Shown one piece after another: positions 1,488 through 34,627 of a stretch of DNA of 54,627 nt (within the stretch, counting starts at the first letter, position 1; each line of letters begins with the position of its first letter). The stretch is taken from NCBI RefSeq assembly GCF_001194135.2, contig NC_068997.1, positions 27,295,452 through 27,350,078 on the forward strand, given 5' to 3'. The stretch comes from Octopus bimaculoides (lineage: Eukaryota). The position numbers and the translations under genes are program-made. The notes under the pieces were generated by a model that saw nothing but the letters and a program-made list of their open reading frames with translations, did not search any database and was not told where the DNA came from.

Positions 1488-1591
1488 CTGTGCTTCAACT
1501 TCTAAGTGTCCATGTGCAGTTCCGTTCCAGTGATGGACATAGACTTTAGTATTTGGTTCAATAACAAATCTTTTGATGTTGCAGTGACGTC
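1488..1591 (-). CDS. Gene 1 last recognisable exon in the window (domain unassigned)
   Basis: ccacttttatcag| acceptor; (G)RHCNIKRFVIEPNTKVYVHHWNGTAHGHLEVEAQ; only the phase-1 frame is open; donor CAG|gtacgt; no stop, so the gene continues. Confidence 0.78.
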
Positions 1592-2240
1592 CTGATAAAA
1601 GTGGAAGTAAAATATTGATCAATAACAAATATTGATACGTTTAATTATTATTGTTGCTGTCATTGATTCTAATACAATAAACATATGACCAAAAATTTTT
1701 CAGCAAAAAACAAAAAACAAAAAACAAAACAAAACAGAGATGCCTTCCTCCAAATACAAACTACAGGAACTACCTAAACGCGTTGCAATCTCTTCTCGTC
1801 ATGATGACTAAAGCTATAGCAACGTTGAGACCCTTCCTGTATTGTCAGCAGCTATCTCAGGGTTACATAATTTCGTCCTTTAAACTTGTGCAACCAGTGA
1901 CACAAGCCCAGTAGTTATCAGGATAGAGGATTTGTATAGAGTTATCTTCTCTTAGGTGAGCAGTTAAAGAGCTGAAGCGTCTCATATGTCCTGAGTGCGT
2001 TGGGATGTCTGTGAATGACTTTCTTCCGGAGAGAATTTCGTGACATGCTAAGTAAACCATAACTGAAACATTCACTGATGCAACTATTCTGGGTCAGAGT
2101 AGTCCTGGGAAAAATTGGTGTTAAGAGAGGGTTTAATACACATCAAAACCCTGGAAGTTCAGAACCCGGGCTTCACTACCGTATCTAATTTAAAATTATA
2201 CTTACGACAGATGCTCAAATATATCAATGAAAAATGTTAC

Positions 2241-2364
2241 CTGATATTTGGGACTGGTGTTCTGGTATCCAGTCATTATTATTGTGGTCGATTCCACTGC
2301 AGTTTGTTTTCGGAATATCCCCTAGTTCGTAGTGAGCGACCAAACCTTTTTTTAACACTTGGTC
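2241..2364 (-). CDS. Gene 1 exon: C-terminal end of LamG-like domain
   Basis: tacttattggcag| acceptor; DQVLKKGLVAHYELGDIPKTNCSGIDHNNNDWIPEHQSQIS with a GLVAHY strand; donor G|gtaaca; phase 0-1. Confidence 0.78.
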
Positions 2365-2624
2365 CTGCCAATAAGTAAAGAATATAACGGTATTGTTAAT
2401 ATTAAGGACCATCAAGGACACAGGTGAAAGCTTGCAGTGACATACAAAATCTTCACACGATACTTCTATAAATCACTTTTACGTTTAATCATCTGTACAG
2501 TAGAAATATACCATAGATACACAATATAAGGGGATGTAGAACAAATGTGTGAAACAGACTGAAATGGAATGGAAATAATCTGAAAACATACATACACACA
2601 CAGACGTGCGTGCACCACCCCACC

Positions 2625-2660
<36 letters not shown>

Positions 2661-3673
2661 NNNNNNNNNNNNNNNNNNNNNNNNNNNNNNNNNNNNNNNN
2701 NNNNNNNNNNNNNNNNNNNNNNNNNNNNNNNNNNNNNNNNNNNNNNNNNNNNNNNNNNNNNNNNNNNNNNNNNNNNNNNNNNNNNNNNNNNNNNNNNNNN
2801 NNNNNNNNNNNNNNNNNNNNNNNNNNNNNNNNNNNNNNNNNNNNNNNNNNNNNNNNNNNNNNNNNNNNNNNNNNNNNNNNNNNNNNNNNNNNNNNNNNNN
2901 NNNNNNNNNNNNNNNNNNNNNNNNNNNNNNNNNNNNNNNNNNNNNNNNNNNNNNNNNNNNNNNNNNNNNNNNNNNNNNNNNNNNNNNNNNNNNNNNNNNN
3001 NNNNNNNNNNNNNNNNNNNNNNNNNNNNNNNNNNNNNNNNNNNNNNNNNNNNNNNNNNNNNNNNNNNNNNNNNNNNNNNNNNNNNNNNNNNNNNNNNNNN
3101 NNNNNNNNNNNNNNNNNNNNNNNNNNNNNNNNNNNNNNNNNNNNNNNNNNNNNNNNNNNNNNNNNNNNNNNNNNNNNNNNNNNNNNNNNNNNNNNNNNNN
3201 NNNNNNNNNNNNNNNNNNNNNNNNNNNNNNNNNNNNNNNNNNNNNNNNNNNNNNNNNNNNNNNNNNNNNNNNNNNNNNNNNNNNNNNNNNNNNNNNNNNN
3301 NNNNNNNNNNNNNNNNNNNNNNNNNNNNNNNNNNNNNNNNNNNNNNNNNNNNNNNNNNNNNNNNNNNNNNNNNNNNNNNNNNNNNNNNNNNNNNNNNNNN
3401 NNNNNNNNNNNNNNNNNNNNNNNNNNNNNNNNNNNNNNNNNNNNNNNNNNNNNNGTTCTAGAAAATAAAGAATATGACTGAAATTATAAATCCTGAAATG
3501 ACTTAATTGATTTCTCAATCAGTCAATGCACAAACATTTTCTCAAACATTGCTGCCTTGTTCCACACACATAACGTTGGTAGAATTATTTTGAGTTTTGG
3601 TCACGTGTAATTTCTCATTCTCATTGTTTGTTACTATTGTGTGTGTGTCTGTGTTTGTGTGTGCGCGCGTGCG

Positions 3674-3727
<54 letters not shown>

Positions 3728-4843
3728 GTAAGATTTAGTTGAATTAGGTACTTAAATTGTGACACCTCGTTAGGTCGGAATAATATACACAAACAACAAC
3801 AATATTATGTAAATATCAAATTTGGTACATAAGTACCAGCTGAATAATATTTCTGCGGTATATGCAGACAACTAGACCCAGATGAGTGAAGAAATCCGCT
3901 CTTGAGCTGTTCAGACATGTACATTATATTAAATATACGGTCCATAATATTTACGAAGGGCAAAATCCGAGACAGGTGAATAAATATAAATGAGTAACAG
4001 TGGAGGTAAAGGTCTCAATCTATTACAGAAGTCTAGAAATTAAACAACTCCTTAATAGATAAATCTAGACCAAAGGTTCTGAATCAATTTTGGCCAAACG
4101 GCGGGTCCTTTACCGCAAATAGCTGTTACGTGGTATTCGGGCTAAATCTTGCCTTTTCTGGGTTCCAGGAAACTTCGAGGTCTTCCACCACCATCCCCTC
4201 TTTCTTTTCTGAAACAAAGTGGTTTGCGGCGGTTTGGCGGTCAGATACGTTGAATGCACGCGAAAAATCCGAGATTTTTCTTTTTTTTCTTCCTGTCCTT
4301 ACTGACAAACGTTCATTCATTAAATCTATTGCAAATGCACCGCCAGTACAAATTCCCACGGACCACTTTCTTAGTCATATTGTGCCTAGATTTACTACAC
4401 TTTTTGGATCTAGTTTGTTTCATTCACAAAATCTGCATTTTTTAAAAGGAAGTAAAAAGATCTGAAAATTGGTTATATTGTTGCAGTTTTCCACGTTTAT
4501 TCCTGCAAAATCATGAAATTCTGGAGAACAAATTTGACGAAAAAGTTAGACATTTAAAAATCGAAAAAAGACTTCCTATTTTTAGCCAATAATGAGACAG
4601 AAATTTTCTACGTTGTAGAGTGTCAACTTAGCGGTGTCAGCTTTAAGGTTGTACTTAAAGCCATATCTGCATACCAGTGGTTTCTGGGTTATTTCTCCTC
4701 ATCTCGGATAGAGAGATGGAGCCACTAAAATCTTGTTTGAAATATATATTTTTTAAAGTGATTCACAGCACTGATCTAATAAATAGAAGATTATTATTCC
4801 TAAATCTCTGAACGAGAGACATTCAGTAACAGTACTCTAGAGA

Positions 4844-5204
4844 AAGGATTATTTACCAACATAATGTGGCAGTCCTAGTTAGGGCGATTGTTACTGTTAT
4901 TTAGCCCCAGGAAACATCGTCTCTAGCTGGCTATATGACACACTATCTGCATCCTTATATTTTCGAACAAGGCGCCATCTCTAGCCGAGCCGTTATTCCT
5001 TGCCGATGAAGAGAAATAACCCAGAAACCATTGGTACGCAGATATTGCTTTGGGCTGAGTGGGGACGCTAAACTCCCTGGTTCGAAAATATAAGGACGCA
5101 GATAGTGTGTCATATAGCCGGCTAGAGACGATGTTTCCTAGGACTAAATAGCAGTAACAATCATCCTAACAAGCACTTCCACATTATGTTGGCAAATAAT
5201 CTTT
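4844..5204. mobile_element. Foldback MITE with ~130-bp terminal inverted repeats
   Basis: 4844-4972 is the reverse complement of 5076-5204 at high identity; a second internal fragment lies at 4655-4722 in opposite orientation. Confidence 0.75.
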
Positions 5205-5220
5205 ACTATATATATATATA

Positions 5221-5285
5221 GTTTTCCAATAAGAATGGGTTTTCCAATAAGAATGGGTTTTCCAATAAGAATGGGTTTTCCAATA
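5221..5285. repeat. 18-bp tandem repeat, about 3.6 copies
   Basis: Unit GTTTTCCAATAAGAATGG. Confidence 0.95.
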
Positions 5286-5431
5286 TAGGACGGATATATG
5301 AGTATTGATACAATATCATGCTCTCATAAAAACCTATTAATGTTTACCGAACGATTTCATGCTGAAAACATCCCAGAAGTGCAGAGGTAAATTAGCAATC
5401 ATCGGACATAACTAAGTGTATACGTGTGTGT

Positions 5432-5481
<50 letters not shown>

Positions 5482-6242
5482 NNNNNNNNNNNNNNNNNNN
5501 NNNNNNNNNNNNNNNNNNNNNNNNNNNNNNNNNNNNNNNNNNNNNNNNNNNNNNNNNNNNNNNNNNNNNNNNNNNNNNNNNNNNNNNNNNNNNNNNNNNN
5601 NNNNNNNNNNNNNNNNNNNNNNNNNNNNNNNNNNNNNNNNNNNNNNNNNNNNNNNNNNNNNNNNNNNNNNNNNNNNNNNNNNNNNNNNNNNNNNNNNNNN
5701 NNNNNNNNNNNNNNNNNNNNNNNNNNNNNNNNNNNNNNNNNNNNNNNNNNNNNNNNNNNNNNNNNNNNNNNNNNNNNNNNNNNNNNNNNNNNNNNNNNNN
5801 NNNNNNNNNNNNNNNNNNNNNNNNNNNNNNNNNNNNNNNNNNNNNNNNNNNNNNNNNNNNNNNNNNNNNNNNNNNNNNNNNNNNNNNNNNNNNNNNNNNN
5901 NNNNNNNNNNNNNNNNNNNNNNNNNNNNNNNNNNNNNNNNNNNNNNNNNNNNNNNNNNNNNNNNNNNNNNNNNNNNNNNNNNNNNNNNNNNNNNNNNNNN
6001 NNNNNNNNNNNNNNNNNNNNNNNNNNNNNNNNNNNNNNNNNNNNNNNNNNNNNNNNNNNNNNNNNNNNNNNNNNNNNNNNNNNNNNNNNNNNNNNNNNNN
6101 NNNNNNNNNNNNNNNNNNNNNNNNNNNNNNNNNNNNNNNNNNNNNNNGGGGGGGGGGCGAAAGGCAAAGAAACATGGAAATATCTCTCATCAGTCTTGGA
6201 AATCCAGAGTACATGCACGGTTCGATGTCCAACATACATACA

Positions 6243-6273
<31 letters not shown>

Positions 6274-7267
6274 GTGTGTGTATGCATATACATATGCATA
6301 TATGTGTGTGTGCGTATGCGTGAGTGTATGTGTATATGTATATATGTATATATTCATATTTATATGTATGTATGTATTTATATATATATGTGTGTGTGTG
6401 TGTGTTTGTGTCCGTGTTTGTCCCACCACCGCTAGATAGCTGGCATTAGTTCGTTCACGTCCTTATAACTTGGCTGATTCGGTTAAAGAAATCCATAAAA
6501 TAAAAACCAGACTTAAAAATGAATATTGGTTGGGAGGATTTGCTCGGCTAAAAATCTTGCGAGGTGGTCCTCATGTCCAAATACTGAAACAAGAAAATGA
6601 TAAAGTACATACGTATGTTTCANNNNNNNNNNGTATGTATGTATGTATGTATGTATGTATGTATGTATTAGTTACCTACTTATGTGCATATGTATCTATC
6701 TACCTATACGCACGTGTGTGTGTATGAGAGTGTGTGTGCGTGTATGAGTGTGTGTGTGTATGTGTGTGTGTGGTCTCTCTGCATGTAATGTAAATGGGTC
6801 TCCGGCAGTTTCGACGATGAGTATGCAGGTGTTCAATAAACTGAACTATCGATTCATTGAATTAACATAAAACTCGCTGGACATCTCATTCACATTATTC
6901 TCAGGCAGAATCAATGCGGCACAGTGTTGTGAGAAGGTTCAAGCGTCCTTATATATTGCCACTTGCAGTATGATGTCTCTATGACTAAGAGACTTAACGT
7001 GCAGCTGCTCAGTTCCTCTGTTTGCGAACAAGTTTCCCAGACTGCTATATTTCACCACTGTATGTAGCCGAAGCAGCGCTGTATAGTGTTGGCTAGTGTT
7101 CCATTAGTTTGTGGACTGAATTTCAAATACAGCAATGGGTACAGTTGAGAGTTTTAGGGTTTCCGATTATATTACGGTACTCCCTAAACTTAAAAGTATG
7201 TCACAAACATTTTAAAATTGACAACTTAGTGTATGTTAATGAAAAAGCGTTAACAATCGATTATACA

Positions 7268-7925
7268 ATCAGCCAACCAACCAGCCAACCAGCCAGCCAA
7301 TGAACGAACGAACGAACGAACGAACGAACGAACGAACGAACGAACGAACGAACCAACGAACCAACCGACCAGCCAACCAACCAACCAACCAACCAACCAA
7401 CCAACCAGCCAACCAACCAGNNNNNNNNNNNNNNNNNNNNNNNNNNNNNNNNNNNNNNNNNNNNNNNNNNNNNNNNNNNNNNNNNNNNNNNNNNNNNNNN
7501 NNNNNNNNNNNNNNNNNNNNNNNNNNNNNNNNNNNNNNNNNNNNNNNNNNNNNNNNNNNNNNNNNNNNNNNNNNNNNNNNNNNNNNNNNNNNNNNNNNNN
7601 NNNNNNNNNNNNNNNNNNNNNNNNNNNNNNNNNNNNNNNNNNNNNNNNNNNNNNNNNNNNNNNNNNNNNNNNNNNNNNNNNNNNNNNNNNNNNNNNNNNN
7701 NNNNNNNNNNNNNNNNNNNNNNNNNNNNNNNNNNNNNNNNNNNNNNNNNNNNNNNNNNNNNNNNNNNNNNNNNNNNNNNNNNNNNNNNNNNNNNNNNNNN
7801 NNNNNNNNNNNNNNNNNNNNNNNNNNNNNNNNNNGACCGACCGACTGACCGACCGACCGACCGACCGACTGACCGACCGACCAACCAACCAACCAGCCAG
7901 TCAACTAACCGATCAACTGACTAAC
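7268..7925. repeat. Compound tetranucleotide microsatellite spanning a gap
   Basis: (AGCC/AACC)n, (AACG)n, (AACC)n, gap, (GACC)n, (AACC)n. Confidence 0.9.
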
Positions 7926-7986
7926 CAAGTAAGCGAGCAAGCAAACAAGTGACTAACCAATCTACCAATCAGAAAAAAAGACATAC

Positions 7987-8211
7987 CTTCTTAGAATTAA
8001 CCTTTTTACCATTAGTAATTAAACTGATTTCAGTTCCAGTGTTGACAACTGCTACCGAATGCCATTGATGTAGGTGGTACTGAGTGTTAGAAGAGGTCAT
8101 TGGTATGGTACAAAGGTTCGACTTGCCTGGCGGACTGTAAAACGCTTGAAATCTTCCGTGTTGATAGGCAATACCGAAATGGAAGCAGTTATATATTCCA
8201 CCAGCTATTAA
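7987..8211 (-). CDS. Gene 1 exon: LamG-like domain core
   Basis: atatttcag| acceptor; 75 open codons LIAGGIYNCFHFGIAYQHGRFQAFYSPPGKSNLCTIPMTSSNTQYHLHQWHSVAVVNTGTEISLITNGKKVNSKK with the QWH.VAVV...L..NG motif; donor AAG|gtatgt; phase 0-0. Confidence 0.9.
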
Positions 8212-8727
8212 CTGAAATATTTAAAAAATAACAAAAATAACAACAACAATCATCATCATCATCATCATCATCATTTAATATCTATTTTCCATGCTGGCAT
8301 GGGTTGAGAACTTTGATAAAAGTCGGCAAGGCCAAAACCCGCACCAAACACCTTTGTTGTTTTCGGCATGGATTCTACAGCTGCATGCCCTTCCTAACAC
8401 CATCCACTTCACAGAGTGTACTGGGTGGTTTGTACGTAACACTAGCATTAACGCTTCTTACGTAAGACGAACACAAATGCTTGAACGAAATACGGAACTA
8501 AATATGTCTGTGTTGTGGGGAGCAGCAGGTAAAAAGAAAACAAACACGCACACACACGCGCTCACACACACGCACACACACATACACAAGCAAGCATAAC
8601 ATGCGTGCAAAACAAGATGGAGAAACAAGTGTCGAGTACCGAAGGCAGAGTAAAATACAGTGTTTTATTAAAGGTGAAGACCTTCAGTTTATGAACTTTT
8701 TCAGCTTCAATAAAATATTGTATTCAA

Positions 8728-8761
<34 letters not shown>

Positions 8762-8886
8762 ACTTACATATGTATAATATAATTTTATATTATATTATAG
8801 AACAATAACAGATACAAGAGCAACGAAAACCACTACCGCCACAACAGCAACAACAACAGCAACAGCAATAATAGCTTTGATCTTAC

Positions 8887-9021
8887 CCGGTTTGTCTGGT
8901 CCATCAAAGTTGGTTTCACCCAAGCTGCTATGGTATATTTCGGTCCTGGACTCCACTGGCCTAAATCTATGTAGGTATCGTTGCCATCAAAAGAGCCACC
9001 ACAAGAATATGGCGGTCCGAT
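8887..9021 (-). CDS. Gene 1 exon: start of LamG-like (concanavalin A-like) domain
   Basis: ttctattcctag| acceptor; IGPPYSCGGSFDGNDTYIDLGQWSPGPKYTIAAWVKPTLMDQTNR with SFDG..YIDLG and TI.AWVKP motifs; donor CGG|gtaaga; phase 0-0. Confidence 0.9.
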
Positions 9022-10084
9022 CTAGGAATAGAATTAAAATATATATAAAAAAAGATACATGAATGTTAAGTATGGCGAGATCTTCGGGACCTTCGTCAGT
9101 TAAAAACAAAAAAAGAGGTTAAAGTTCTTTCCCAAGATCTATGGACTCATAGACCCACTTTCCCGGTTTCTGTGGCGTATACATTCCCCACCTGGATGGG
9201 ACGCCAATCCATCGTAGGAATACTCATTTTCGTCAGCTGAGTGAACTGGAACAATATGAAATGAAGTGTTTTATTTAAGAACACAACGCATCACCCGGTC
9301 ACAGAATCAAAATCACAATCTTACGATCATAAGTTCAGCACTCTAACCACAAAGTCACACGCCCCTACTACCTTCATCAATTACGACAATGAAGATTCAC
9401 TCTCTCAATCAAGTGAATTAACGTGAAAGTGGCTAAATATTCCATAGAGACGTGCAACAAACAAGAAATCAACCTTTTTGAATTATAGATAAATCCATCT
9501 GACGGGCTTCTGTACAGTTTCCGTCTACCTAATTTCACTCACAAAGTATGGATCGACTCGAGGCTATAAATAATGACATTTTTCTTAGACACCCTAGATC
9601 TCGTGGTTGTGAAGCGAACTTCTTAATCATTCGGCCATACTCTGTCTGTAACATGAAATAAATCGCCTACTATCGCTCACACGTCTCATGTCTTTATCTA
9701 TATAATGCAGCTGATGACCAATGGCGCCATTGGTTACAATTTTCCAGTGGTCCGCAGTATTTGTGACGAGAAGGACTTCAAGGGAGTATTTGTAACTTGG
9801 TTCCGAACACATATTATGGAACATCGAACATAAAAATGTTTGTGCTTGCTCCCATCACCTCTTGACAACCGGTGTTGGTTTTTCACATCACCGTCAATTA
9901 GCGGGTTGGTAAGGGAGGTAAATGTAAATACAAGAAAGTACTGGGATCGATTTGGTTGTCATCAACGTAGTACCTCTCCATGGTCACAGTTCATTTACTG
10001 AAACAGATGTAAGGTAAAAAATAAATAACAATTAAAAAAAACAGTAACACTTTCTCGAGTGGGAGCAATGTATGAGTGACTCAC

Positions 10085-10209
10085 CTTGTTATTAGTGATA
10101 CATCTAGAAAACGTTTGATTTTTAAAGGTGAACGGAAGTTGGCACACATCTCTGGCGTTGTCACCTCCTGTAGCCTTAACCTGTACTAGTTCAACTGAGC
10201 GGCAAATAC
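10085..10209 (-). CDS. Gene 1 exon: EGF Cys3 then N-terminal half of a fibronectin type II domain
   Basis: ctatcacttctag| acceptor; (G)ICRSVELVQVKATGGDNARDVCQLPFTFKNQTFSRCITNNK, like FN2 TGG.....C..PF.F....F..C; donor AAG|gtgagt; phase 1-0. Confidence 0.88.
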
Positions 10210-10225
10210 CTAGAAGTGATAGATA

Positions 10226-10260
<35 letters not shown>

Positions 10261-10438
10261 CGAGAGAGAGGGCGAGAGAGAGAGAATGGGTGTTTAACTG
10301 AAGGTAGGAATNNNNNNNNNNNNNNNNNNNNNNNNNNNNNNNNNNNNNNNNNNNNNNNNNNNNNNNNNNNNNNNNNNNNNNNNNNNNNNNNNNNNNNNNN
10401 NNNNNNNNNNNNNNNNNNNNNNNNNNNNNNNNNNNNNN

Positions 10439-10470
<32 letters not shown>

Positions 10471-10521
10471 GAATATATACACACATATATATGTATATGT
10501 ATGTATATGTATACATATACA

Positions 10522-10569
<48 letters not shown>

Positions 10570-11770: not shown

Positions 11771-11795
11771 TTATTATTATTGTTATTATTATTAA

Positions 11796-14310: not shown

Positions 14311-14319
14311 TACTTGTTG

Positions 14320-15345
14320 GCCCCTGCAACAGACTTATATTCCATTACAATTGAGCCGACCATCCCCACTTTGGAGTCGTCCGACACCATGACGGTAACG
14401 TCGTCTGCGTACACCGACACTGCTCCCCAGAGTCCAATTTCGAAAAGGAGGCCTTGTAACTGTTCCAATTTCCGCAGCAGTGGCTCGAGAGCCAACATAT
14501 GCAGAGGAGGTGACAGCGGCCAGCTCTGACTGAGGGACCGAATGTGCGATACGACACAGTTTTGATAGATGACCATTTACTCTGACCACTGAGCAGGTAC
14601 CACAGCGCATTGCAACAATTCAGCCTCTGAAAACGAGTCCGACCCTATCGAAACCTTTTGACTGGTCTAAATTGATCCGGGCCCCACCGGAGCCAGCTTT
14701 AGCCCTAGCCATCTCTACGATGTATCGCATAAAGTGGAAGTTGTCGAGGATAGACCTGCTTGGGATTGTGCATCCCAGACCAGACTACTAACGACAAGTG
14801 ACAGCCTTTTCGCTAACACCTTGGCCAAAATCTTAAACTCTGTGTTTAGTAGAGTTATGGGCCGAAAAGTTCCATACCTATACCTGACCAGTTTTGCTTA
14901 TGTATTTTCTTGACCTCCAATACTGTCACTTCGTTTTCTTCTCGACCTTCTAAGACGGCCGCCGCTAACCAGGTAATGGATATTTCTGGCGGCACATTCA
15001 ACACCTTGATCTTGGCAAGGCGTTGGTCGCGGTAGCTGGGGGATTAACATTTTCATTCCTCAAAGTGGTCGAGGAATGACATCTGGCTTCTTCTTCATTC
15101 CCAAATCTCACCTCAGTAATTCTAAATTTCTTTCCTCGCGCCCGAGGCATTTTTGTATTTCGCTCTCAGGAACATTTTCCATTCGGCGTGACTTAACTCC
15201 GATGCAGCGGTATGTGACCATTCATCTTAAGATATTCTTTATCACGTCGGATGGAGGGTTTAGAGCTAGCCTTCTTCCATTCCTTTTTACAATTTCCCTG
15301 GCCATTTTTAGATCGTCTTCATCTATGCGGAAATCTGACAAATAA
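14320..15345 (-). mobile_element. L1/Tx1-clade LINE reverse-transcriptase fragment
   Basis: PLSP...LALEPLLRKL..SVYADDVTVMVSD; upstream DQSKGFDRV and PITLLNTEFKILAKVL motifs; frameshifted. Confidence 0.85.
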
Positions 15346-20836: not shown

Positions 20837-20898
<62 letters not shown>

Positions 20899-21557
20899 NN
20901 NNNNNNNNNNNNNNNNNNNNNNNNNNNNNNNNNNNNNNNNNNNNNNNNNNNNNNNNNNNNNNNNNNNNNNNNNNNNNNNNNNNNNNNNNNNNNNNNNNNN
21001 NNNNNNNNNNNNNNNNNNNNNNNNNNNNNNNNNNNNNNNNNNNNNNNNNNNNNNNNNNNNNNNNNNNNNNNNNNNNNNNNNNNNNNNNNNNNNNNNNNNN
21101 NNNNNNNNNNNNNNNNNNNNNNNNNNNNNNNNNNNNNNNNNNNNNNNNNNNNNNNNNNNNNNNNNNNNNNNNNNNNNNNNNNNNNNNNNNNNNNNNNNNN
21201 NNNNNNNNNNNNNNNNNNNNNNNNNNNNNNNNNNNNNNNNNNNNNNNNNNNNNNNNNNNNNNNNNNNNNNNNNNNNNNNNNNNNNNNNNNNNNNNNNNNN
21301 NNNNNNNNNNNNNNNNNNNNNNNNNNNNNNNNNNNNNNNNNNNNNNNNNNNNNNNNNNNNNNNNNNNNNNNNNNNNNNNNNNNNNNNNNNNNNNNNNNNN
21401 NNNNNNNNNNNNNNNNNNNNNNNNNNNNNNNNNNNNNNNNNNNNNNNNNNNNNNNNNNNNNNNNNNNNNNNNNNNNNNNNNNNNNNNNNNNNNNNNNNNN
21501 NNNNNNNNNNNNNNNNNNNNNNNNNNNNNNNNNNNNNNNNNNNNNNNNNNNNNNNNN

Positions 21558-22164: not shown

Positions 22165-23192
22165 CATATATGTGTGTGTGTGTGTGTATGTGTGTATATA
22201 TATGTATGTATATATATATATANNNNNNNNNNNNNNNNNNNNNNNNNNNNNNNNNNNNNNNNNNNNNNNNNNNNNNNNNNNNNNNNNNNNNNNNNNNNNN
22301 NNNNNNNNNNNNNNNNNNNNNNNNNNNNNNNNNNNNNNNNNNNNNNNNNNNNNNNNNNNNNNNNNNNNNNNNNNNNNNNNNNNNNNNNNNNNNNNNNNNN
22401 NNNNNNNNNNNNNNNNNNNNNNNNNNNNNNNNNNNNNNNNNNNNNNNNNNNNNNNNNNNNNNNNNNNNNNNNNNNNNNNNNNNNNNNNNNNNNNNNNNNN
22501 NNNNNNNNNNNNNNNNNNNNNNNNNNNNNNNNNNNNNNNNNNNNNNNNNNNNNNNNNNNNNNNNNNNNNNNNNNNNNNNNNNNNNNNNNNNNNNNNNNNN
22601 NNNNNNNNNNNNNNNNNNNNNNNNNNNNNNNNNNNNNNNNNNNNNNNNNNNNNNNNNNNNNNNNNNNNNNNNNNNNNNNNNNNNNNNNNNNNNNNNNNNN
22701 NNNNNNNNNNNNNNNNNNNNNNNNNNNNNNNNNNNNNNNNNNNNNNNNNNNNNNNNNNNNNNNNNNNNNNNNNNNNNNNNNNNNNNNNNNNNNNNNNNNN
22801 NNNNNNNNNNNNNNNNNNNNNNNNNNNNNNNNNNNNNNNNNNNNNNNNNNNNNNNNNNNNNNNNNNNNNNNNNNNNNNNNNNNNNNNNNNNNNNNNNNNN
22901 NNNNNNNNNNNNNNNNNNNNNNNNNNNNNNNNNNNNNNNNNNNNNNNNNNNNNNNNNNNNNNNNNNNNNNNNNNNNNNNNNNNNNNNNNNNNNNNNNNNN
23001 NNNNNNNNNNNNNNNNNNNNNNNNNNNNNNNNNNNNNNNNNNNNNNNNNNNNNNNNNNNNNNNNNNNNNNNNNNNNNNNNNNNNNNNNNNNNNNNNNNNN
23101 NNNNNNNNNNNNNNNNNNNNNNNNNNNNNNNNNNNNNNNNNNNNNNNNNNNNNNNNNNNNNNNNNNNNNNNNNNNNNNNNNNNNNNNNNNNN

Positions 23193-23243
<51 letters not shown>

Positions 23244-23961: not shown

Positions 23962-24877
23962 CATGACAATAAAAGGACCTTCGCTTACTTTTCTTGCATG
24001 AGTTCAAGCTTGGGCACAATGCTTCCTAAACTGCTGCCAATATCGACAGAGCATGGGGAGAGAGGTCTACAAGTGATCGCTCAGTATGAAGGGGGTTTCA
24101 GAAATTCTGTAGTGGTGATGAGAGCCTTGAAAATGAAGAAGGTTGAGGGCGGTCATGCAGTCTTGACAATGAACAATTGCAAGCAATTGTTGAGCAAAAG
24201 TCACGTCAAAGTGTCAGCAGCACTTGGTGTCGGTATTGGCACTTGGTGTCTGCAGAAGATTGGTAAGATGGAAAAGCTCGATAAATGGGTACTGCATGAG
24301 CTCAATGAAAATCAAAAAGTTTGGCGTTTTGAAGAGTGCTCCATGCTCTTTCTGCGAAACACTAATGATCCTTTTCTTGACAAAATAGTCACTTGTGACG
24401 AAAAGTGGATCCTTTATGTTAACCGTAAATGATCAGGTCAATGGCTTGATCGTGATGAGTCCCCCAAACATTTCCCAAAGTCAAAGTTGCATCAACAAAA
24501 GATTATGGTGACTGTCTGGTGGTCTGCAATTGGTGTTGTCCATTACAGCTTTCTGGAAGCCAATCAGAGCATTACAGCAGAGGTTTACTGCAATCAACTC
24601 GCTGAAATGCATGCTCACTTGCAAAAAATGAGACCTGCATTGGTGAATCGACATGGCCCAATTCTTCTCCACGATAATGCAAAGCCACATGTTGCAAGAA
24701 TGACCCTCCAGAAACTCACAGACTTGGGATACGAGACTTTAACACAACCTCCATATTCTCCTGATCTTCCACACACTGACTACCATTTTTTAAAGCATTT
24801 AAACGCGTTTTTAAGTGATAAAACTTTCAGGTTCAAACCATAGGTGGAGTCAGCTTTCAAAGATTTCTTAACATCAA
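23962..24877 (+). mobile_element. Mariner DD34D transposase pseudogene in gene 1 intron 3
   Basis: WVLHEL, IVTCDEKWILY, LLHDNAKPH and PPYSPDLPHTDYH motifs; 34 residues between the second and third Asp; stops at 24430 and 24841; 3' end runs into a gap. Confidence 0.95.
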
Positions 24878-25565: not shown

Positions 25566-26169
25566 GAGTCATGTACTGAGGTCAACGTGAAACAATCGAC
25601 TAAACCTCTACCCCATATATATGGTCATTACAACAATGTTTTTAAAGAATTATATATCGTTGTGGTGTAGCAGAAACATCGGGTTGCAGAATTAGTAAAA
25701 CGCCGATTACTGAGTGAGCATTGAGTCAAAAATACTCCTAACTACGCCTCTGAATGAATGAGTGGTATTATGTCAACGCAGGTCATCGTATTTAGTATCG
25801 TCTTTTTCGTCGTCTGTTCGATTGCTGCCAGAGTCATCTTTGATAGACATCCATTTTAAGATTCAAATTTTTACTGGTATCTCCAGAAATTCCTGATCAA
25901 TTTCGACCCAGATTTAATCGCTGACTATAGAAATCCAATTAATTTTTCACTCTTACTACTTTTGAAAGAAAAGCATAAATTTCTTAACTTGCTATGCTCC
26001 GCTTGCACTAGAATATGGACGATTTGTGCGGCGTAAAAAAATAAAAAAGAAATTATGTTCAGCGTTCTGGTGTAATATGTAGGCACCCAGCGATAAGGTG
26101 TAAACTTAATCCTTAATCCAACTGAACACTACCATCTGACTCTTGGGTAAAAAAGAAGAAGCAGAGTTT

Positions 26170-26410
26170 CCTTCACAAGTCATATTGACTCATAAGGGCC
26201 GGTTTCCCGGTTTCATGGCGTATATATTCCCCAACTTGACGGGACGCCGATCCGTGGCAGGATTACTCAATTTTACCAGCTGCGTGGACTGGAACAACGT
26301 GAAATGAAGCGTTTTGTTCAAGAACACAACACATAATCCGGTCCAGGATTCGAATCTACAATCTTACGATCGTGAATCCAGCACCCTAACAACTAGGCCA
26401 CGCGCCTCCA
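26170..26410 (-). mobile_element. SINE-like family D (second copy at 9125-9370)
   Basis: Shared GACTCATA.GGGCCGGTTTCCCGGTTTC.TGGCGTATA..TTCCCCA..GAACACAAC..TCTTACGATC. Confidence 0.75.
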
Positions 26411-26757
26411 TGACCCATGAGTACTTTTAGCTGAGTCTATACTGTTGCAAGGATTTAGGTTAGGTTTCCTGATAGAACAATTTCCACCCTTTTCCCTACC
26501 AAACTCGGAGGCTTCCCCAAAATATGGTGGACTCTGTCCTTTCTTATCTAGCTAAGCCAGAACTTCGCCTCCCATAGTTTCAATTCACAGTTGCAGTTTT
26601 GCATTTTTCTCTTTGAAAATATTTTTGAGAAAAACATTACATTATTACTCTTTATACATCCATCACAAAAACACTGAGTTTCAATACATGTCTTATCAAA
26701 AGCTTCCCCACCACTCCACGAAGCATTTACTGAGGCTTTAATTAAACATAGCGATAC

Positions 26758-26911
26758 CTGATATTGTTAGGTCCATATGAGCGAGTAAAAGTGAAGTCAT
26801 TTCTTATTATGCTGTTAGCAGCAATGTCGAAAGCGACTTTGACGAATTCAGTTCGTCCACGTTTTGAGTAAAGCTTGCGTGGAGTATTTTGGTAACAGTC
26901 ATACGGGAGAC
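26758..26911 (-). CDS. Gene 1 exon 3: GON domain
   Basis: ctatttcag| acceptor; (S)LPYDCYQNTPRKLYSKRGRTEFVKVAFDIAANSIIRNDFTFTRSYGPNNI, like GON F.KV..D.....I...D..F.R..G; donor AG|gtatcg; phase 1-2. Confidence 0.9.
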
Positions 26912-28332
26912 CTGAAATAGAAACAAGCAAATTAGCTTCTTAATCGCATCATCTAAATAGCTCAAACTATTAGCAATAACATAACATTGTGTAGAATATA
27001 ACGGCTTTGCCAATAGAGCAGTACAATAAAGATATTTTTGTTGTTGTTATTTAGTTCCACGTCAACCCTGATTAAGCAAACTGCTGATCAAAAGCATTCT
27101 AGAAATTACTTTCTACCTTTTTTGGAGAACGTGCTATCCAGTGTTTCTAGCTGTTGTTTCTAGCGGGAAAAGTGACCACTCTGAAGCTCTCTTAACGGTT
27201 TATGGTCTTTATAGTGGTTGGGTGCTGATGTTATTTGAAATTTTTCGAGCTTCTTTTTGGAGAACCCTTAGAAAAGTTGTGGTTAGGATCAAAAAACAAT
27301 AATCTAAACTTTTTTTTGCGATTTCAATTTTGTACTTCCCTGTTGAAGTTTGAAACCCCGCCAGAATAGGGGTAAATACTAATTTAATCAATTTAAAACT
27401 CTACGTGAATATATAGTATTTTAGCTTAGCATGGGTTTTTTTAATACATTGAATCCAAAAATAGTATTTGACTTTCCAAGATGGCGGCCAGAGTACATAA
27501 TTTTTAAATGAAATCAGTAGCTGTTACCAAGAATGTCATGTGATATGTCTTTATATATGTTTTTGAGGTCATAGAACACGAATTTGATGCGGAATAAACA
27601 GTTTAATAAATAATTAAGTAATTAAATTTTACAGAAGAATGAACATTTCCCGAGTTCCGTAATTTATCAGATACACTAATACATTAATAACCATTATGAC
27701 TTCAGAACCTCACACCAAGTCATTCAATGCATGATTGAAATCAATAAGGCTTACATTTGTCTTGCAACTCACATTATTCAAATAAATCTTCAAATTTATT
27801 GCATATCGTTCCATAGACGGTTTTTGATAATTTTATTTAAGATGGAAAATGTTGCTGGTTTTTGGCACAGAAAGGGCCGTGTGTCTGGCATATCTGATTT
27901 CTAAATACAGTCTATTGACCTTTTCTTTATCCAATATATCTGTCATAAAATAGGCCTCTACCTCAGTGCTGCTAGTAAATAGTCCACTATGCTATTCTAA
28001 AATATCAAGGTCAGCTGTCCGTCGTCTATCCATTGCTATAGTGGTGATTTCCTTCTTCTCCAGTCCGTCCAACATTAACTGCTACTGGTGGTTATCTCAT
28101 TCTTTAATGATGTCAGGTACTCACCACTCCCCCAAGTTTGGTGAGTTTGGTATAAAGCGCTTAACAGCTTTTAAGCTATAAAGCGCTTAACAGTATAGGC
28201 GTGTCGTCCGACTCAAATTTTCATGCACCTTTGGCCATTTCAGTCTGACCGGTCGCCTATACTACTAATCGCGTTACAGGTGCGAAACCAATGGTCCCTG
28301 TATGACTGGCCATAACATTTAACTTCCATGTA

Positions 28333-28370
<38 letters not shown>

Positions 28371-28587
28371 TGTGTGTGTGTAGTGTGTAGAAGAGTGTAG
28401 GCTCGGAATGTTAAAGATTTCTTCCAATTTTCCCGAGCGTAAACCTAATACATTCTGTTGTTCTTTTACCTCGTCTTTGAGTTTTTGTTTGGACTATATA
28501 TGTACACACACATGCGCGCGCACGCACACACACATATGTACAAAAAGGTGTAAACAGTTAAATCATGTACTAAATTTTCATACTTAC

Positions 28588-28671
28588 TAACGTAATTATA
28601 CACAGACGCATAATTCTTAGATCTTCCCGCCGGCAAAGTCAGGTATTCTTTCGGATTCTTAGATTTAATAC
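28588..28671 (-). CDS. Gene 1 exon 2: GON domain
   Basis: tttttcag|GT acceptor; (G)IKSKNPKEYLTLPAGRSKNYASVYNYV with the GON PKEY.TL..G...N...VY motif; donor A|gtaagt; 84 nt, phase 1-1. Confidence 0.92.
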
Positions 28672-30158
28672 CTGAAAAAGAAAGACGAGTGGAATGATAA
28701 AACGGAAAATACATATTAAATGATACTTTTAAGGATGAGGATGAGATGCGAGTGGGGACTTTTGATTAATTCGTAGCAACATAGACATGGACAGGTGGCT
28801 ATGAACTTCGTTCGTCAAACACGTGATTCCAGTTTCGATTCCACTGCGCAGTACCTCGATTCACCTGTGGACTTGGATCCACCAAAATCTTCGTAGTGCA
28901 ACTGTATGTATGCGTATGCAAGTATGTATGTATGCTTAGCTTTTCCTTGGGGCTGGCCAGATTGGAGCAATCTCGAGTACAACCAGCCGAAATTGCAAAG
29001 ATAATCTGGAACTCGACTGAGGAAAGAAAACTCCGAATGACTCTCCTTGTTTTCTTTGTATCGTCTATCTGGATGTTTTGTTGTCCCTTTTTTGTATTCT
29101 ACATACATACATACATACATACATACATACATACATACATACATACATACATACATACATACCAAATCCATTCACAAGGCTTTGGTCGGCCCGAGGCTAC
29201 AGTGAAACACACTAGCCAAAGGTACCACGCAGTGAGACTGAAACCGAAGCCATGTGTTTTGGAAGCAAGTTTCTTAACATACATATATATATATATATGT
29301 TTGTGTGTGTGTTAATTTTTAAGTATATGTATACATGTGTGTAGATCTGTTTGTATATACGTGCATATATCTGTGTGTATATATTTATACATATGAGTAT
29401 GTATGTATGCATGTATGTATGTGTGTATACATATGTATATATANNNNNNNNNNNNNNNNNNNNNNNNNNNNNNNNNNNNNNNNNNNNNNNNNNNNNNNNN
29501 NNNNNNNNNNNNNNNNNNNNNNNNNNNNNNNNNNNNNNNNNNNNNNNNNNNNNNNNNNNNNNNNNNNNNNNNNNNNNNNNNNNNNNNNNNNNNNNNNNNN
29601 NNNNNNNNNNNNNNNNNNNNNNNNNNNNNNNNNNNNNNNNNNNNNNNNNNNNNNNNNNNNNNNNNNNNNNNNNNNNNNNNNNNNNNNNNNNNNNNNNNNN
29701 NNNNNNNNNNNNNNNNNNNNNNNNNNNNNNNNNNNNNNNNNNNNNNNNNNNNNNNNNNNNNNNNNNNNNNNNNNNNNNNNNNNNNNNNNNNNNNNNNNNN
29801 NNNNNNNNNNNNNNNNNNNNNNNNNNNNNNNNNNNNNNNNNNNNNNNNNNNNNNNNNNNNNNNNNNNNNNNNNNNNNNNNNNNNNNNNNNNNNNNNNNNN
29901 NNNNNNNNNNNNNNNNNNNNNNNNNNNNNNNNNNNNNNNNNNNNNNNNNNNNNNNNNNNNNNNNNNNNNNNNNNNNNNNNNNNNNNNNNNNNNNNNNNNN
30001 NNNNNNNNNNNNNNNNNNNNNNNNNNNNNNNNNNNNNNNNNNNNNNNNNNNNNNNNNNNNNNNNNNNNNNNNNNNNNNNNNNNNNNNNNNNNNNNNNNNN
30101 NNNNNNNNNNNNNNNNNNNNNNNNNNNNNNNNNNNNNNNNNNNNNNNNNNNNNNNNNN

Positions 30159-30194
<36 letters not shown>

Positions 30195-30229
30195 TATACG
30201 TGTGTGTATGTTTGTGTGTCTGTGTTTGT

Positions 30230-30350
30230 ACCCCAACCATCACTTGACAACCGATGCTGGTGTGTTTACGTCCCCGCAACCTAGTGGTTCGGCAAATAGA
30301 CCGATAGAATAAGTACTAGGCTTACAAAGAATAAGACTTGGGATCGAAAT
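30230..30350 (+). mobile_element. SINE-like family B (related copies at about 9850, 12370, 16190, 20020, 33130)
   Basis: Shared CTTGACAACCGATG.TGGTGTGTTTACGTCCCCG..AC.TAG.GGTTCGGC..GACCGATAGAATAAGTACT. Confidence 0.75.
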
Positions 30351-30734
30351 GACTGAAACAAATAAAAGAATAAAAGAATAAAAGAATATATGCAAACGTA
30401 TACACACATACGTATGTACGTTTGTATCTTTTTGATTATCTTCTACCCCACCTTAAATTCCTTCTTCTATCACTCATTCCGGCCTATCTATTGCCCAAAG
30501 CAGCGGCTGATACATACATCAACCACTGGACTCTGAACACTTTCTATCTTTGGAGAAACAGCTTCAAAGTCCAGTAGTTCACTTGGGTTTTGCTTAATAT
30601 TTCTAGTTTCTTTGTTTTGTTCTTTCTGACCTTAAATATGACACATCAAAAGCAAACACACCAACTATTACACGTTCCCCTTAGCTTGGTAATCATTCTG
30701 TATTCACACCTGTAATAGAAACTACATGTGTGCG

Positions 30735-30774
<40 letters not shown>

Positions 30775-31183
30775 GGTGAGTGTGTGTGTGTATACATATA
30801 TGCATATGAATATATAAGTACGTACATATATGTATGTGAATGCATATGTATGTGAATGTATATGTATGTATATATGTTGGTATGTTTATATGTACTCATA
30901 TATGTAGCTGTATGGTTAGAACCTTTCTTCCCAACCACATGGTTCCGGGTTCAGTCCTACTGCATTGGCAAGTGTTTTCTACTATAGCCTCAGGCCGACC
31001 AAAGTCTTGTGAGTGGATTTAGTAGATGGAAACTAAAAGAAACCCATTGTATATATATATATATATCGTCAATGTGTCATATATCCGGAAAAGAAGTTCA
31101 TTCTAAAAGGCATAGAGCAGTAATGTATTTATATGTAGTTAAGCCTATGTCCGGTCATAGGGTAACCGGAAATAGACTTAATA

Positions 31184-31261
<78 letters not shown>

Positions 31262-31339
31262 AGGTTTTTCAAAAAAATTGATATCATTTCGCAATCTAAT
31301 AACTTTGCCAGTTCTTGTTCAAATGACTTCGAATTTTAA

Positions 31340-31900
31340 CAACATGTTTAGAAATAGGTCAAAATTTTATGTCTAATGCTTGATTGTCTATCTTTTCAGG
31401 TATAGAAATTGCATTCACTGGAAGAGAAAAGCCGTTTTGTGTGTTGGAGTGTGCTCGAACACAGTCGAACAAGACTGTGCATCGTGCATTTGTGAGAGAG
31501 TTGTCTAAAAAGTCACCAACGGCAATGCAGATTTTGACATGGCATAATAAATTCAAAGAGGAAGGCTGTCTGTGCAGGGCAAAAGGATCTGGACGGTCAC
31601 TAACATCGGAAGAGATGGTCGAGCTGGTTCGCTAAAAACTCTTGCAAAGCCCTAAGAAGTCCATAAGAACAAGTTTGGAAACTCAGAGTCCTCCAGTTTG
31701 GCGCGTCCTGATGAAATGTGCTGTTGAAATGGCCACTACCTTCACCTGACCTGACACTACTGCACTGGAGACTGTTACTCAGGATATGCTGTAGCATCAT
31801 TGGGAGGAGCTGGGCTACCGACTTGACGTGTGCCGTGTATCAGGTGGTGCGCATATTGAACATTTGCGAAATCGCTCATGGAATCCACATACCTTTGGAT
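31340..31900 (+). mobile_element. Internally deleted Tc1/mariner-superfamily transposon (WPPRSPDL-type)
   Basis: N-terminal HTH FCVLECARTQSNKTVHRAFVRE..KFKEEGCLCRAKGSGR joined to KWPLPSPDLT..WEELGYRLDVCRVSGGAHIEHL; most of the DDD core is absent. Confidence 0.8.
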
Positions 31901-32838
31901 TTCCCATTCAAATTTGGAGAAATGAATCTTTTTACATCCAATGAGTCAACGCTTTGCACGTGTATCATGCTTTTCATAAAGATGCACTCGCGAGCATGAC
32001 TATGTTCAGGAAAAGTGAGCGAGTTGGAACCCTACAGGCAATCCTTGTGTTTTCAAAAGAGAGTGGTGTTGTGGGTCATTGACATCTTCCTGATATCAAA
32101 TTACCTAGAAATGTGATAAAATCCATATAATATCAATATCGTGTGTGAAACAAATAATCTTTTACAGTGCGATATTTCTTTTGTAGTTCAGTCTATATAA
32201 TTTGTAGCTGTTTGTACACACATTGCATTCTAACTTCGCTAAGTCGGTGAGACAGGTATTCATATCTTTGAATGTCTCTTCGCCGTTGATTACAACGTTT
32301 TACCACAGAGTAAATCCTGATACAAGGCCGTCACGTCTTAAGCGGAGGACCTTAACAAGGTATGTCAGCCTCATAAGACTACAGCAATATAACTTCAGCA
32401 ATATTATCGCAGTTAGAGCAACAAAAAATATATTCACATATAGATATGCACAATGGTACACATACAGACATACACACACATATATAAATACAGGTACAGA
32501 GAAACAAATATACATGCACAAGGTTCCACTCACGCCCACATCGTCTCTCTCTCTCTCTCTCTGTCACACACACACACACATACACAAACACTCACATCAT
32601 CATACACATACTTGCATCCCCACAAACACACCCACAGGCAATCACTTAAACAACCTTGAACAAAGTATGAAAAGATACACACACACATGCGCGCGCGCGC
32701 ACACACACACACACAGAGTGACATGCACAAATACATACACAAATACATACACAGAAACACCCAGATACACAAACAGGCAGAGACAGGTGGATACAGGCAA
32801 CCACTCACCCACCCACACACACAGACACAGACACATAG

Positions 32839-32870
<32 letters not shown>

Positions 32871-33289
32871 AAAAACACACGAACGCACATAATATACACA
32901 TATATACACACTTATAGATTTATAAAAAGATGGTCCATAAATCAAAGTTTACATTGATAATATGTGTTGAAGTCTATATATACATTCTTTTACTTGTTTC
33001 TGTCATTTTGACTGTGGTCATGCTGGAGCACCATATATATAATCTTTGATTTTTAAAAATATTTTTACTTCTTCCAGTCATTTGACTGTCCATGCTGGAG
33101 CACCGCCTTAAAGGTTTTTCTGGGCGAAGAAATCGACCTCAGAACTTATTCATAGTACTTATTCTATCGGTCTCTTTGGCCGAACCGCTAGGTAACGGGG
33201 ACGTAAACACACTAACATCGGTTGTCAAGTGATTATGAGAGGATAAACACAGACACACACAGACGGGGGCACCCAAAAGAAACCGGAAT

Positions 33290-33500
33290 TATGCAATATT
33301 ATTTTATTCACTTCGTTTTACATGTTTATACTTTTATCGCTTTCAAAGTATTCTCCATTGGGAGCAATGCATCAGTCCAGACACATTTTCCACTGTTCGA
33401 AGCAGTGCTGGAACTCTTGTGAAGTGAACTCTTTTAACGAGTCCTTAGCATTTTTCTTCACGTCTTCCACGTCTACAAATTCCGTAGCGCCAGATTTCGT
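33290..33500 (-). mobile_element. Mariner 3' fragment
   Basis: DVEDVKKNAKDSLKEFTSQEFQHCFEQWK..CIA.NGEYFE C-terminus. Confidence 0.8.
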
Positions 33501-33509
33501 CATAAGCCA

Positions 33510-33935
33510 GCAAGTTCGAAGTGGGGGTAAGTCAATTACATTGACCCTAGTACTCAACTGGTACATATTTTATCGACTCCGAGACGATGAAAGGCGAAGT
33601 CGATGCGTTGGAATTTGAACTCAGTTCGTAAAGACGGACAAAATGCTGCTAAGCATTTTGCCTGGCGTGCCAACAATTCTACCTAACCGCCCTATAACCT
33701 GTCAATATTACAATTAGGAGAAAGGCGGCAAGCTTGCAGTATCATTAGTACACTGGGAAAAATGCTTACCGGCATTTCATCCGTCTTTACAAACGGAGTT
33801 CAAATCCGACCGATGTCGACTTTGTTTTTCGTCCTTTCGAGATCGAAAAAATAAATACCAGTCGAACACTGGGACTCTATGTAATCGACTTAACCACTCC
33901 ACCAAAACTGTTTGTTTTAAGCCAAAATTTGAAAC
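33510..33935. mobile_element. Head-to-head inverted pair of SINE family A
   Basis: Minus copy 33510-33694 and plus copy 33721-33935, about 27 nt apart. Confidence 0.8.
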
Positions 33936-34425
33936 CAATATTACAGTTCGAAAGATATTTCATATTATGGAAGTGCTCATTTGTTTTGTCGAGAGAGGAA
34001 AAATGAAGTTAAAGAAAATAAAACTAAATTCCGTAGAAAAAAACATTTTTTAGCTATTTTTGTTCTGTGTTAGACAATATGAAATGACAGTCCATTCACG
34101 TTGAATTATGATTCCGCAGGAAAAAGCGACACTTATCTTTATGAGAGTATATCTTTGTTTCGTCGAGAGAAGAAAAATACAATAAGATGAAAAAAAAAAA
34201 AAAAAAGTAACAATTAAAATTCCATTTGCAAAAAGTTAAATTTTTTTCCCCCTCAGATGAAACGAAAGGACAGTCCTATCACGTCACTGTTTTTTTTCTT
34301 CTCATACTACTCAAACATATCCAAACTTAAGATTTTCATTCAATAACAAATTTATCATAAGTATCGTATGGTATCAGAATGCAAGAATGAAAGAGGAGAT
34401 GTAATTTTTCTTTTCTTTTACTTAC

Positions 34426-34627
34426 CATGGCAGTAAAGATTAACCGCATGCCCAGACGAAGTCATTATCTGGTATATACCATCTACAGCACTCGTTCCCA
34501 AACTAATCATAGCTTCCTCGCAAGAATGGTAGACCTCTCCGTAAACCGTAAAAGAAGTAAAAGCTAAAATAAGGTAAAGCCGGATCCATGTTTGGCCGAA
34601 GCTGTTATATTTGCGAAACACGTTCAT
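34426..34627 (-). CDS. Gene 1 exon 1: signal peptide and start of GON domain
   Basis: caaacATG start; MNVFRKYNSFGQTWIRLYLILAFTSFTVYG (hydrophobic core) then EVYHSCEEAMISLGTSAVDGIYQIMTSSGHAVNLYCH, matching the GON start SC.E......DG.Y.I......YC; donor G|gtaagt, phase 1. Confidence 0.9.

Follow-up and report, generated by a model that had tools for sequence, protein, structure and literature searches.

Background

To our knowledge, studies of the GON domain (Pfam PF08685) have dealt with it only where it forms the tail of the proteases ADAMTS9 and ADAMTS20 and of Caenorhabditis elegans GON-1, and for GON itself we know of no experimental finding other than a role in transport out of the endoplasmic reticulum (ER). 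The WSC, LamG-fold and FN2 modules are carbohydrate or matrix binders in the contexts in which they are known. Here we analysed a stretch of 54,627 nucleotides of the octopus Octopus bimaculoides (hereafter the window; position w corresponds to position w + 27,295,451 of chromosome CM046617.1, assembly GCA_001194135.2), in which a gene on the minus strand combines all of these modules. The region from 34627 to 1488, about 700 codons, is in our estimate with a probability of about three in four the 5' part, amounting to the first third, of a single large gene that belongs to an unnamed, mollusc-wide family of mosaic surface proteins and codes for a likely glycan- or matrix-recognition receptor, this function being proposed by analogy with the domains.

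Among described systems, the GON-containing ADAMTS proteins (ADAMTS9, ADAMTS20 and C. elegans GON-1) share PF08685 with the octopus protein, but their GON domain is C-terminal with a protease upstream, whereas the octopus GON domain is N-terminal and interrupted by a WSC domain. Neither in the octopus model nor in its homologues was there a Pfam match to the propeptide, Reprolysin metalloprotease, disintegrin-like, TSP_1 or ADAM_spacer models, in agreement with the first-pass annotation of this locus, in which GON was already the first mature domain, not preceded by a metalloprotease. MEGF10, MEGF11, PEAR1, Draper and CED-1 resemble the mollusc homologues, and only these, in an EGF array, a single transmembrane helix and a short tail, which in the oyster and Batillaria bears an NPxY motif; unlike these receptors, the homologues carry an additional large N-terminal cassette (GON-WSC, LamG, glycine-rich region and second WSC). 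Pfam detected no EMI domain, neither in the octopus model nor in the homologues, and a YxxL motif was not seen either. The WSC domain is shared with Kremen1, Kremen2 and the fungal Wsc sensors, but occurs here without Kringle or CUB domains, and one WSC is nested in another domain. Crumbs proteins also combine EGF with laminin-G-like modules, but there is one Laminin_G_3 domain here rather than three classical LamG domains, and the tails of the homologues end in ...TTA, ...SAA or ...SES, not in ERLI. The mollusc homologues themselves (Crassostrea virginica, Potamilus streckersoni KAK3592745.1, Lottia gigantea) arrange their modules in the same order, beginning with the signal peptide and going as far as the glycine-rich region, and are 32-39% identical to the octopus protein over the N-terminal 300 aa; the octopus differs from them by an incomplete gene model and an uncertain first half of the WSC domain, and from the oyster by an extra intron.

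Structure of the octopus gene

Candidate exons were taken from a six-frame reading of the window, their boundaries were set from the DNA, and the resulting model was verified by splicing. Fifteen exons could be placed, each with AG/GT sites and a verified frame, 14 of them confidently and one (exon 5) doubtfully (Table 1). A profile of the mollusc family, searched against all reading-frame fragments, matched 14 exons in strictly collinear order on the minus strand, with E values per exon from 1e-19 to 3e-3, and gave one match only on the plus strand, with an E value of 0.94. The octopus exons are also placed collinearly by tblastn with the mollusc homologues. The start codon at 34627 opens a typical signal peptide (MNVFRKYNSFGQTWIRLYLILAFTSFTVYG, followed by EVYHSC), directly after which comes the GON domain (Pfam E 8.6e-32, 111.1 bits, model positions 3-161 of 199). 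The signal peptide and the GON domain of the first-pass annotation are thus confirmed, the latter by its hidden Markov model, as are the two ends it had given to the region, 34627 being the start codon and 1488 the last exon base before a GT donor. It had further counted at least 13 phase-compatible exons; the count holds with 14 confident exons out of 15, but the compatibility fails at one junction. With an end in phase 0, exon 9 cannot be joined to exon 10, whose start is in phase 1, and coding sequence must be missing between the two.

Exons 14 and 15 match a segment of the family (HYELG..GIDH..DW..HCN..RF) which is located after the LamG domain. Since exon 15 ends at a GT donor (1488), the gene must extend leftwards beyond the window. 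The left edge of the window adjoins a gap of 1,293 letters (30520-31812 in the coordinates of the flanking locus, L002), and at a distance of 1.4-2.8 kb beyond it there are two intact exons with the glycine-rich motifs of the family (L002 ~31930 and 33182-33328; "..GGGGGGLG..GGGGSHGTLG" and "LLYMGSGGGSGGNPLNMDHSPRG"). Unread letters make up about 13% of the window, in 17 gaps, and about 15% of the gene region, where the gap lengths are estimates only. All 11 gaps within the gene region are intronic, the nearest being 103 nt away from an exon; because no exon touches a gap, no reading frame was carried across one. The gap edges that were inspected (e.g. 20840-20898, 23193-23240 and 22180-22222) adjoin TG/CA or TA microsatellites.

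NCBI splits the locus into two models, XP_014770689.1 (221 aa, "ADAMTS9-like") and XP_052830094.1 (467 aa, "protein crumbs homolog 1"). The head of the GON domain is found in the former and its tail in the latter, and as the domain is coded partly in each model, both represent one gene. XP_014770689.1 ignores the consensus G/GTAAGT donor of exon 4 and runs on in the intron as far as a stop codon, and XP_052830094.1 starts at an internal methionine inside the WSC exon, without a signal peptide. Judged from their sequences, the two models are fragments of one gene, and both are misnamed; assembly gaps caused the split. The public annotation of an octopus "ADAMTS9-like" and a "crumbs homolog 1" gene is corrected accordingly to one gene. 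Three exons used by NCBI (14529-14361, 7188-7131 and 5076-4955) were tried as exons of the family, matched no family member and were judged to be annotation patches. With the first of them, XP_052830094.1 codes 169 nt of a reverse-transcriptase (RT) remnant in another frame, and this piece happens to bridge phase 0 to phase 1 at the place where two family exons are missing.

Table 1. Exons of the octopus gene and transposon remnants in its introns, in window coordinates; the phase is given from exon start to exon end.
Feature	Position	Strand	Phase	Content	Support
Exon 1	34627-34426	-	start to 1	Start codon, signal peptide, GON start	Family profile match; Pfam GON from residue 35
Exon 2	28671-28588	-	1 to 1	GON	tblastn and family profile
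Exon 3	26911-26758	-	1 to 2	GON	Family profile E 8e-11
Exon 4	23628-23456	-	2 to 1	GON to Pfam model position ~161	G/GTAAGT donor; family profile E 2e-17
Exon 5 (doubtful)	20768-20644	-	1 to 0	Candidate WSC first half	Only frame, AG/GT and length fit
Exon 6	20582-20453	-	0 to 1	WSC second half	Pfam WSC E 3.7e-7; family profile E 2e-8; boundaries as oyster exon 6
Exon 7	18298-18175	-	1 to 2	C-terminal GON piece (RCGGYPAKCYP...LFLQL), after the WSC insert	
Exon 8	16712-16609	-	2 to 1	First EGF	Pfam EGF E 1e-5
Exon 9	15896-15775	-	1 to 0	First third of family-specific cysteine-rich module	Family alignment
Exon 10	12901-12749	-	1 to 1	Second EGF and linker	Pfam EGF_2, hEGF; family profile E 9e-15
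Exon 11	10209-10085	-	1 to 0	Truncated FN2-like module	Pfam fn2 positions 1-22 of 42, E 6.5e-5
Exon 12	9021-8887	-	0 to 0	Laminin_G_3, first part	65% identity to Lottia; family profile E 1e-19
Exon 13	8211-7987	-	0 to 0	Laminin_G_3, middle, to model position ~110 of 151	
Exon 14	2364-2241	-	0 to 1	Conserved segment after LamG (GLVAHYELG...C.GIDH..DW)	48% to oyster; family profile E 3e-12
Exon 15	1591-1488	-	1 to 0	Segment leading into glycine-rich region (RHCNIKRF...)	GT donor
RT remnant	14313-14900	-		Frameshifted, in intron 9, gene-sense, YADD motif	Pfam RVT_1 E 2.4e-10
Mariner-type transposase remnant	23998-24843	+		In intron 3, split over two frames	Pfam Transposase_1 E 1.2e-17

A WSC domain nested in the GON domain

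The Pfam match of the octopus GON domain covers the model only up to position 161, and in Lottia and in a unionid mussel it likewise stops at position 161-168. What follows in the octopus is a WSC domain, of which the second half is securely identified (exon 6; a half-domain with 30.7 bits against a cut-off of 27.8), and after it exon 7, which resembles the C-terminus of GON-only proteins (CGG.CG.C.P...L.L). When the WSC domain was deleted in silico by joining exon 4 to exon 7, the GON score rose from 111.1 to 128.5 bits and the match extended over model positions 3-193 of 199 (E 4.1e-37); the same deletion in Lottia raised the score from 87.9 to 106.1 bits, and the corresponding oyster construct reached 121.2 bits over model positions 2-195. 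Aligned jointly with the family, GON-only proteins show a gap of about 85 residues that coincides exactly with the WSC domain. AlphaFold2 modelled the WSC-deleted octopus GON domain (48 aligned sequences) with a mean predicted local distance difference test score (pLDDT) of 89.5 and a predicted template modelling score (pTM) of 0.87; exon 7 forms three strands in this model (block-mean pLDDT 81-89), and the only weak spot is the WSC junction. With the insert kept, the GON parts were predicted at pLDDT 94-98 and 84-85 and the WSC region folded poorly. The WSC domain is inserted in a loop of the GON domain between Pfam positions ~161 and ~162, and the last three GON strands are encoded after it.

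In the octopus as well as in the oyster, the WSC cassette is bounded by phase-1 introns and is therefore a symmetric 1-1 module, the skipping of which preserves the reading frame, as seen in the splicing check. Phase-1 intron bounds are the classic footprint of an insertion by exon shuffling. Because the cassette is flanked in this way in both animals, insertion of WSC into GON by exon shuffling is plausible, and to this extent so is the origin by exon shuffling that had been suggested when the locus was first annotated. The phase-1-bounded cassette would then be a clean example of a domain-in-domain insertion by exon shuffling, and the insertion provides a natural experiment for the structure and function of GON, a domain that heads a conserved family and tolerates a whole further domain in one of its loops, which marks this loop as a surface loop. 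In structure comparisons, GON showed a weak local likeness to ficolin and intelectin in their N-terminal subdomain (E values above 0.2 over about 72-76 aligned columns), which was not relied on.

Further modules and comparison with the oyster gene

Behind the GON domain, Pfam matches in exons 8 and 10 (EGF), 11 (half of an FN2) and 12-13 (LamG-like) bear out the modules listed in the first-pass annotation, from which the nested WSC domain of exon 6 had been absent. The truncation of the FN2 is the same in Lottia, and the LamG-like module is a single Laminin_G_3 domain extending over both of its exons (Pfam E 5.8e-10). By contrast, the resistin-like identity proposed for exon 9 had to be given up: no Pfam model matches the exon, and the family profile finds no resistin chain in the PDB at E values of up to 10. 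Exon 9, which shows 8 invariant positions in the family alignment, is the first third of a cysteine-rich module specific to the family, and the module as a whole has no match in Pfam either.

As a reference for the gene structure we used the gap-free C. virginica locus of XP_078331959.1. At every junction compared, between the 3' end of exon 4 and the 5' end of exon 10, intron positions and phases equal those of the oyster; in particular, the donor of exon 4 lies in the ninth codon after a conserved glycine, in phase 1, as it does in the oyster. An extra octopus intron is found within the counterpart of oyster exon 19.

An unnamed family of mollusc proteins

The spliced exons, minus the EGF exons to avoid swamping, served as the query of an exhaustive search with HMMER through 1.84 billion cluster representatives, in which mollusc proteins were the best matches apart from the octopus itself. 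Matches to XP_009066331.1 of Lottia gigantea (1,241 aa, partial; E 4.9e-91) and XP_022345628.1 of Crassostrea virginica (2,223 aa; E 3e-72) form one continuous alignment that begins at the signal peptide and takes in GON, WSC and the cysteine-rich segments after it, and further family members were found in Pinctada, Sinanodonta, Potamilus, Batillaria, Ostrea and Dreissena. Word-indexed protein searches, either with the concatenated exons or with GON alone, returned only fragments of octopus gene models, including two older ones. The family thus occurs in gastropods, bivalves and the octopus, and all homologues are labelled "uncharacterized" or "hypothetical"; a literature search yielded no paper that deals with both GON and WSC, with GON proteins other than ADAMTS, or that cites these accessions. 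The family is widespread among molluscs and present in the databases, unnamed and unstudied. Three near-identical loci of C. virginica (LOC111138099, LOC111138107 and LOC111138113) are located on one chromosome record (CM130315.1), which suggests a recent duplication.

Full-length homologues comprise about 2,200 aa. The segment with the HYELG motif is followed in them by a glycine-rich region, a second WSC domain, EGF repeats, one transmembrane helix and a cytoplasmic tail. The second WSC domain matches Kremen1 with an E value of 2e-12, and the EGF repeats, about 14-20 in number, are of the laminin or PEAR1 type (Pfam EGF_laminin, EGF_PEAR1L). One transmembrane helix and a cytoplasmic tail are present in all four homologues for which the C-terminus is available (C. 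virginica, Potamilus, Sinanodonta and Batillaria); the tails are 60-88 residues long, with an NPxY motif in the oyster and in Batillaria. The glycine-rich region of about 300 residues (GSGGGSGGN and GPGGGGSGGS motifs) has no match in Pfam or among PDB sequences, and an ALK/LTK-like identity, which we had considered for it, was rejected on these grounds. A profile search with the glycine-rich region and the second WSC domain retrieved no octopus protein and was swamped by glycine-rich microbial proteins. The region also matches many proteins of about 350-650 aa from metagenomes and genome assemblies as well as some protist proteins, with E values down to 1e-32.

GON domains without a protease are not rare. 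Among the top 150 matches, 99 representatives matched GON, and about 60 of these 99 are without the thrombospondin-repeat motifs that occur in about 30. Most of the long ones with thrombospondin repeats have a C-terminal GON domain, as in the ADAMTS proteases; those without are proteins of amphioxus, Ciona and molluscs that bear the name "uncharacterized" or, in error, "ADAMTS9/20-like". Proteins with GON alone, about 150-300 aa long, are frequent in other animals. In the Ciona intestinalis model XP_078483486.1 ("ADAMTS9-like", 230 aa, truncated), the first half of a WSC domain stands right behind the GON domain, and there the model breaks off; on account of this, the GON-WSC arrangement may predate the molluscs. 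The octopus protein had been described from its DNA as a mosaic of adhesion and lectin-type modules outside any named family, which agrees with the unnamed homologues and the lack of a paper on them, but also as possibly lineage-specific, which does not fit the occurrence of the family in gastropods, bivalves and the octopus and the Ciona model with GON and half a WSC. By its distribution in the databases, the arrangement is not a novelty at the level of the species or of the cephalopods. Of the alternative that it belongs to a widespread family already named, only the first part applies: the family is widespread in molluscs, but it has no name.

Alternative explanations

Several other explanations for these observations are conceivable. 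NCBI lists two models, and small GON-only proteins like the first of them are found elsewhere in animals, as would be expected if the locus held two genes, one for a small secreted GON-only protein of 221 aa and one for a separate EGF/LamG protein of 467 aa. We consider this very improbable, because the GON domain of the first model is devoid of its last three strands, which the second model encodes, the end of the first is an intron read-through past G/GTAAGT, the second begins without a signal peptide at an internal methionine in the middle of the WSC exon, and the mollusc homologues run through without a break, their introns at the same positions. A single collinear gene, as first annotated, accounts for the exons better. 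It is also improbable, although somewhat less so, that the octopus copy is decaying or being remodelled, with exons truly deleted, the first half of the WSC degenerate and a transcript that is non-functional or patched with an exonised transposon. Such decay is suggested by three segments which the family profile did not find in the sequenced DNA, namely the first half of the WSC domain (profile positions 193-236), all but the first third of the cysteine-rich module (403-452) and the end of the LamG domain (688-742; about 55 residues, between 7987 and 2364), by the poor folding of the WSC region, and by the RT remnant, which lies in an intron where two exons are missing and from which NCBI uses 169 nt to restore the frame. 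However, the 14 confident exons are without exception open in frame, with canonical AG/GT sites and conserved cysteines, each missing segment falls in an octopus intron with at least one gap, about 15% of the region being unread, and the glycine-rich exons downstream are intact too. The missing exons are presumably hidden in assembly gaps, and the true exon for the first half of the WSC domain may be located within gap 20899-21557 or 22223-23192.

That the gene is intact but yields, in the octopus, a secreted matrix protein with no anchor in the membrane is unlikely, though less so than decay. No transmembrane exon is seen in the octopus within the window and a 5-kb flank, and none is included in the 1,241 aa of the Lottia model, though that model is flagged as partial. 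Yet a transmembrane helix and tail are found in each of the four homologues that reach the C-terminus. The first description of the protein as secreted is thus probably wrong, given that full-length homologues are type I membrane proteins and that the octopus gene continues past the window. We therefore favour the reading as the 5' part of one large gene for a receptor of the mollusc family. Several observations weigh against it. The C-terminal half of the octopus protein, including the second WSC domain, the EGF array and the membrane anchor, lies beyond the window and the 5 kb of extra flank. Oyster exons 10 (phase 0 to 2), 11 (phase 2 to 1), 16 and 17, and probably the WSC first half, have no match in the sequenced octopus DNA; the four oyster exons correspond exactly to the missing parts of the cysteine-rich module and of LamG. 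The candidate for the WSC first half at 20768-20644 has the phases of oyster exon 5 and a length of 125 nt compared with about 137 nt, but gave no match to the family profile, a poor alignment and a pLDDT below 50, and was left as doubtful. The NPxY motif is degenerate (NPCH) in unionid mussels. GON has no sequence match in the PDB and no significant Foldseek match (best E 0.049, TM 0.22 or less), and as no solved structure resembles it, its fold gives no clue to a ligand. Finally, the proposed function is built entirely on domain analogy.

Possible function

By comparison with its homologues, the octopus protein would comprise about 2,000-2,200 aa and be a receptor of the type I membrane class. 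The outer tip of the protein would carry the carbohydrate- or matrix-binding modules, i.e. the WSC in GON, the FN2-like module, LamG and the second WSC, and a stalk of about 20 EGF repeats of the MEGF10/PEAR1 type might keep this tip off the cell, while the short tail with its NPxY motif might recruit adaptors with PTB domains for endocytosis or engulfment. Such a receptor would most likely recognise glycans or matrix and serve adhesion, scavenging or innate immunity. In C. elegans and in HEK293 cells, the signal peptide and GON domain of GON-1 alone act in the ER and rescue ER-to-Golgi transport (PMC3338439). Like the GON of GON-1 and ADAMTS9, the octopus GON might thus help to export a large cysteine-rich protein from the ER.

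More specifically, though tentatively, the octopus protein could be a member of an undescribed family of invertebrate receptors in which a WSC domain was shuffled in phase 1 into a GON loop and the composite head was placed on a stalk of the MEGF10/Draper type. If this is true, the family would represent a new class of pattern-recognition or scavenger receptors and provide the first clue to an extracellular, ligand-binding role of GON outside the ADAMTS proteases. As a large, conserved and unstudied family, it is a candidate for a glycan or matrix receptor in animals that rely on innate immunity.

Transposon remnants and neighbouring gene

Besides the RT and mariner-type remnants on opposite strands of introns 9 and 3 (Table 1), intron 1 contains an open frame on the plus strand (31384-31635) for a helix-turn-helix-like peptide ("...REKPFCVLECARTQSNKTVHRAFVRE...") that looks transposon-derived. 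A neighbouring gene on the opposite strand (plus) extends rightwards from about 44139, approximately 9.5 kb upstream of the GON start codon; as modelled by NCBI, it codes for a protein of 991 aa with a Lectin_C and many Ig domains.

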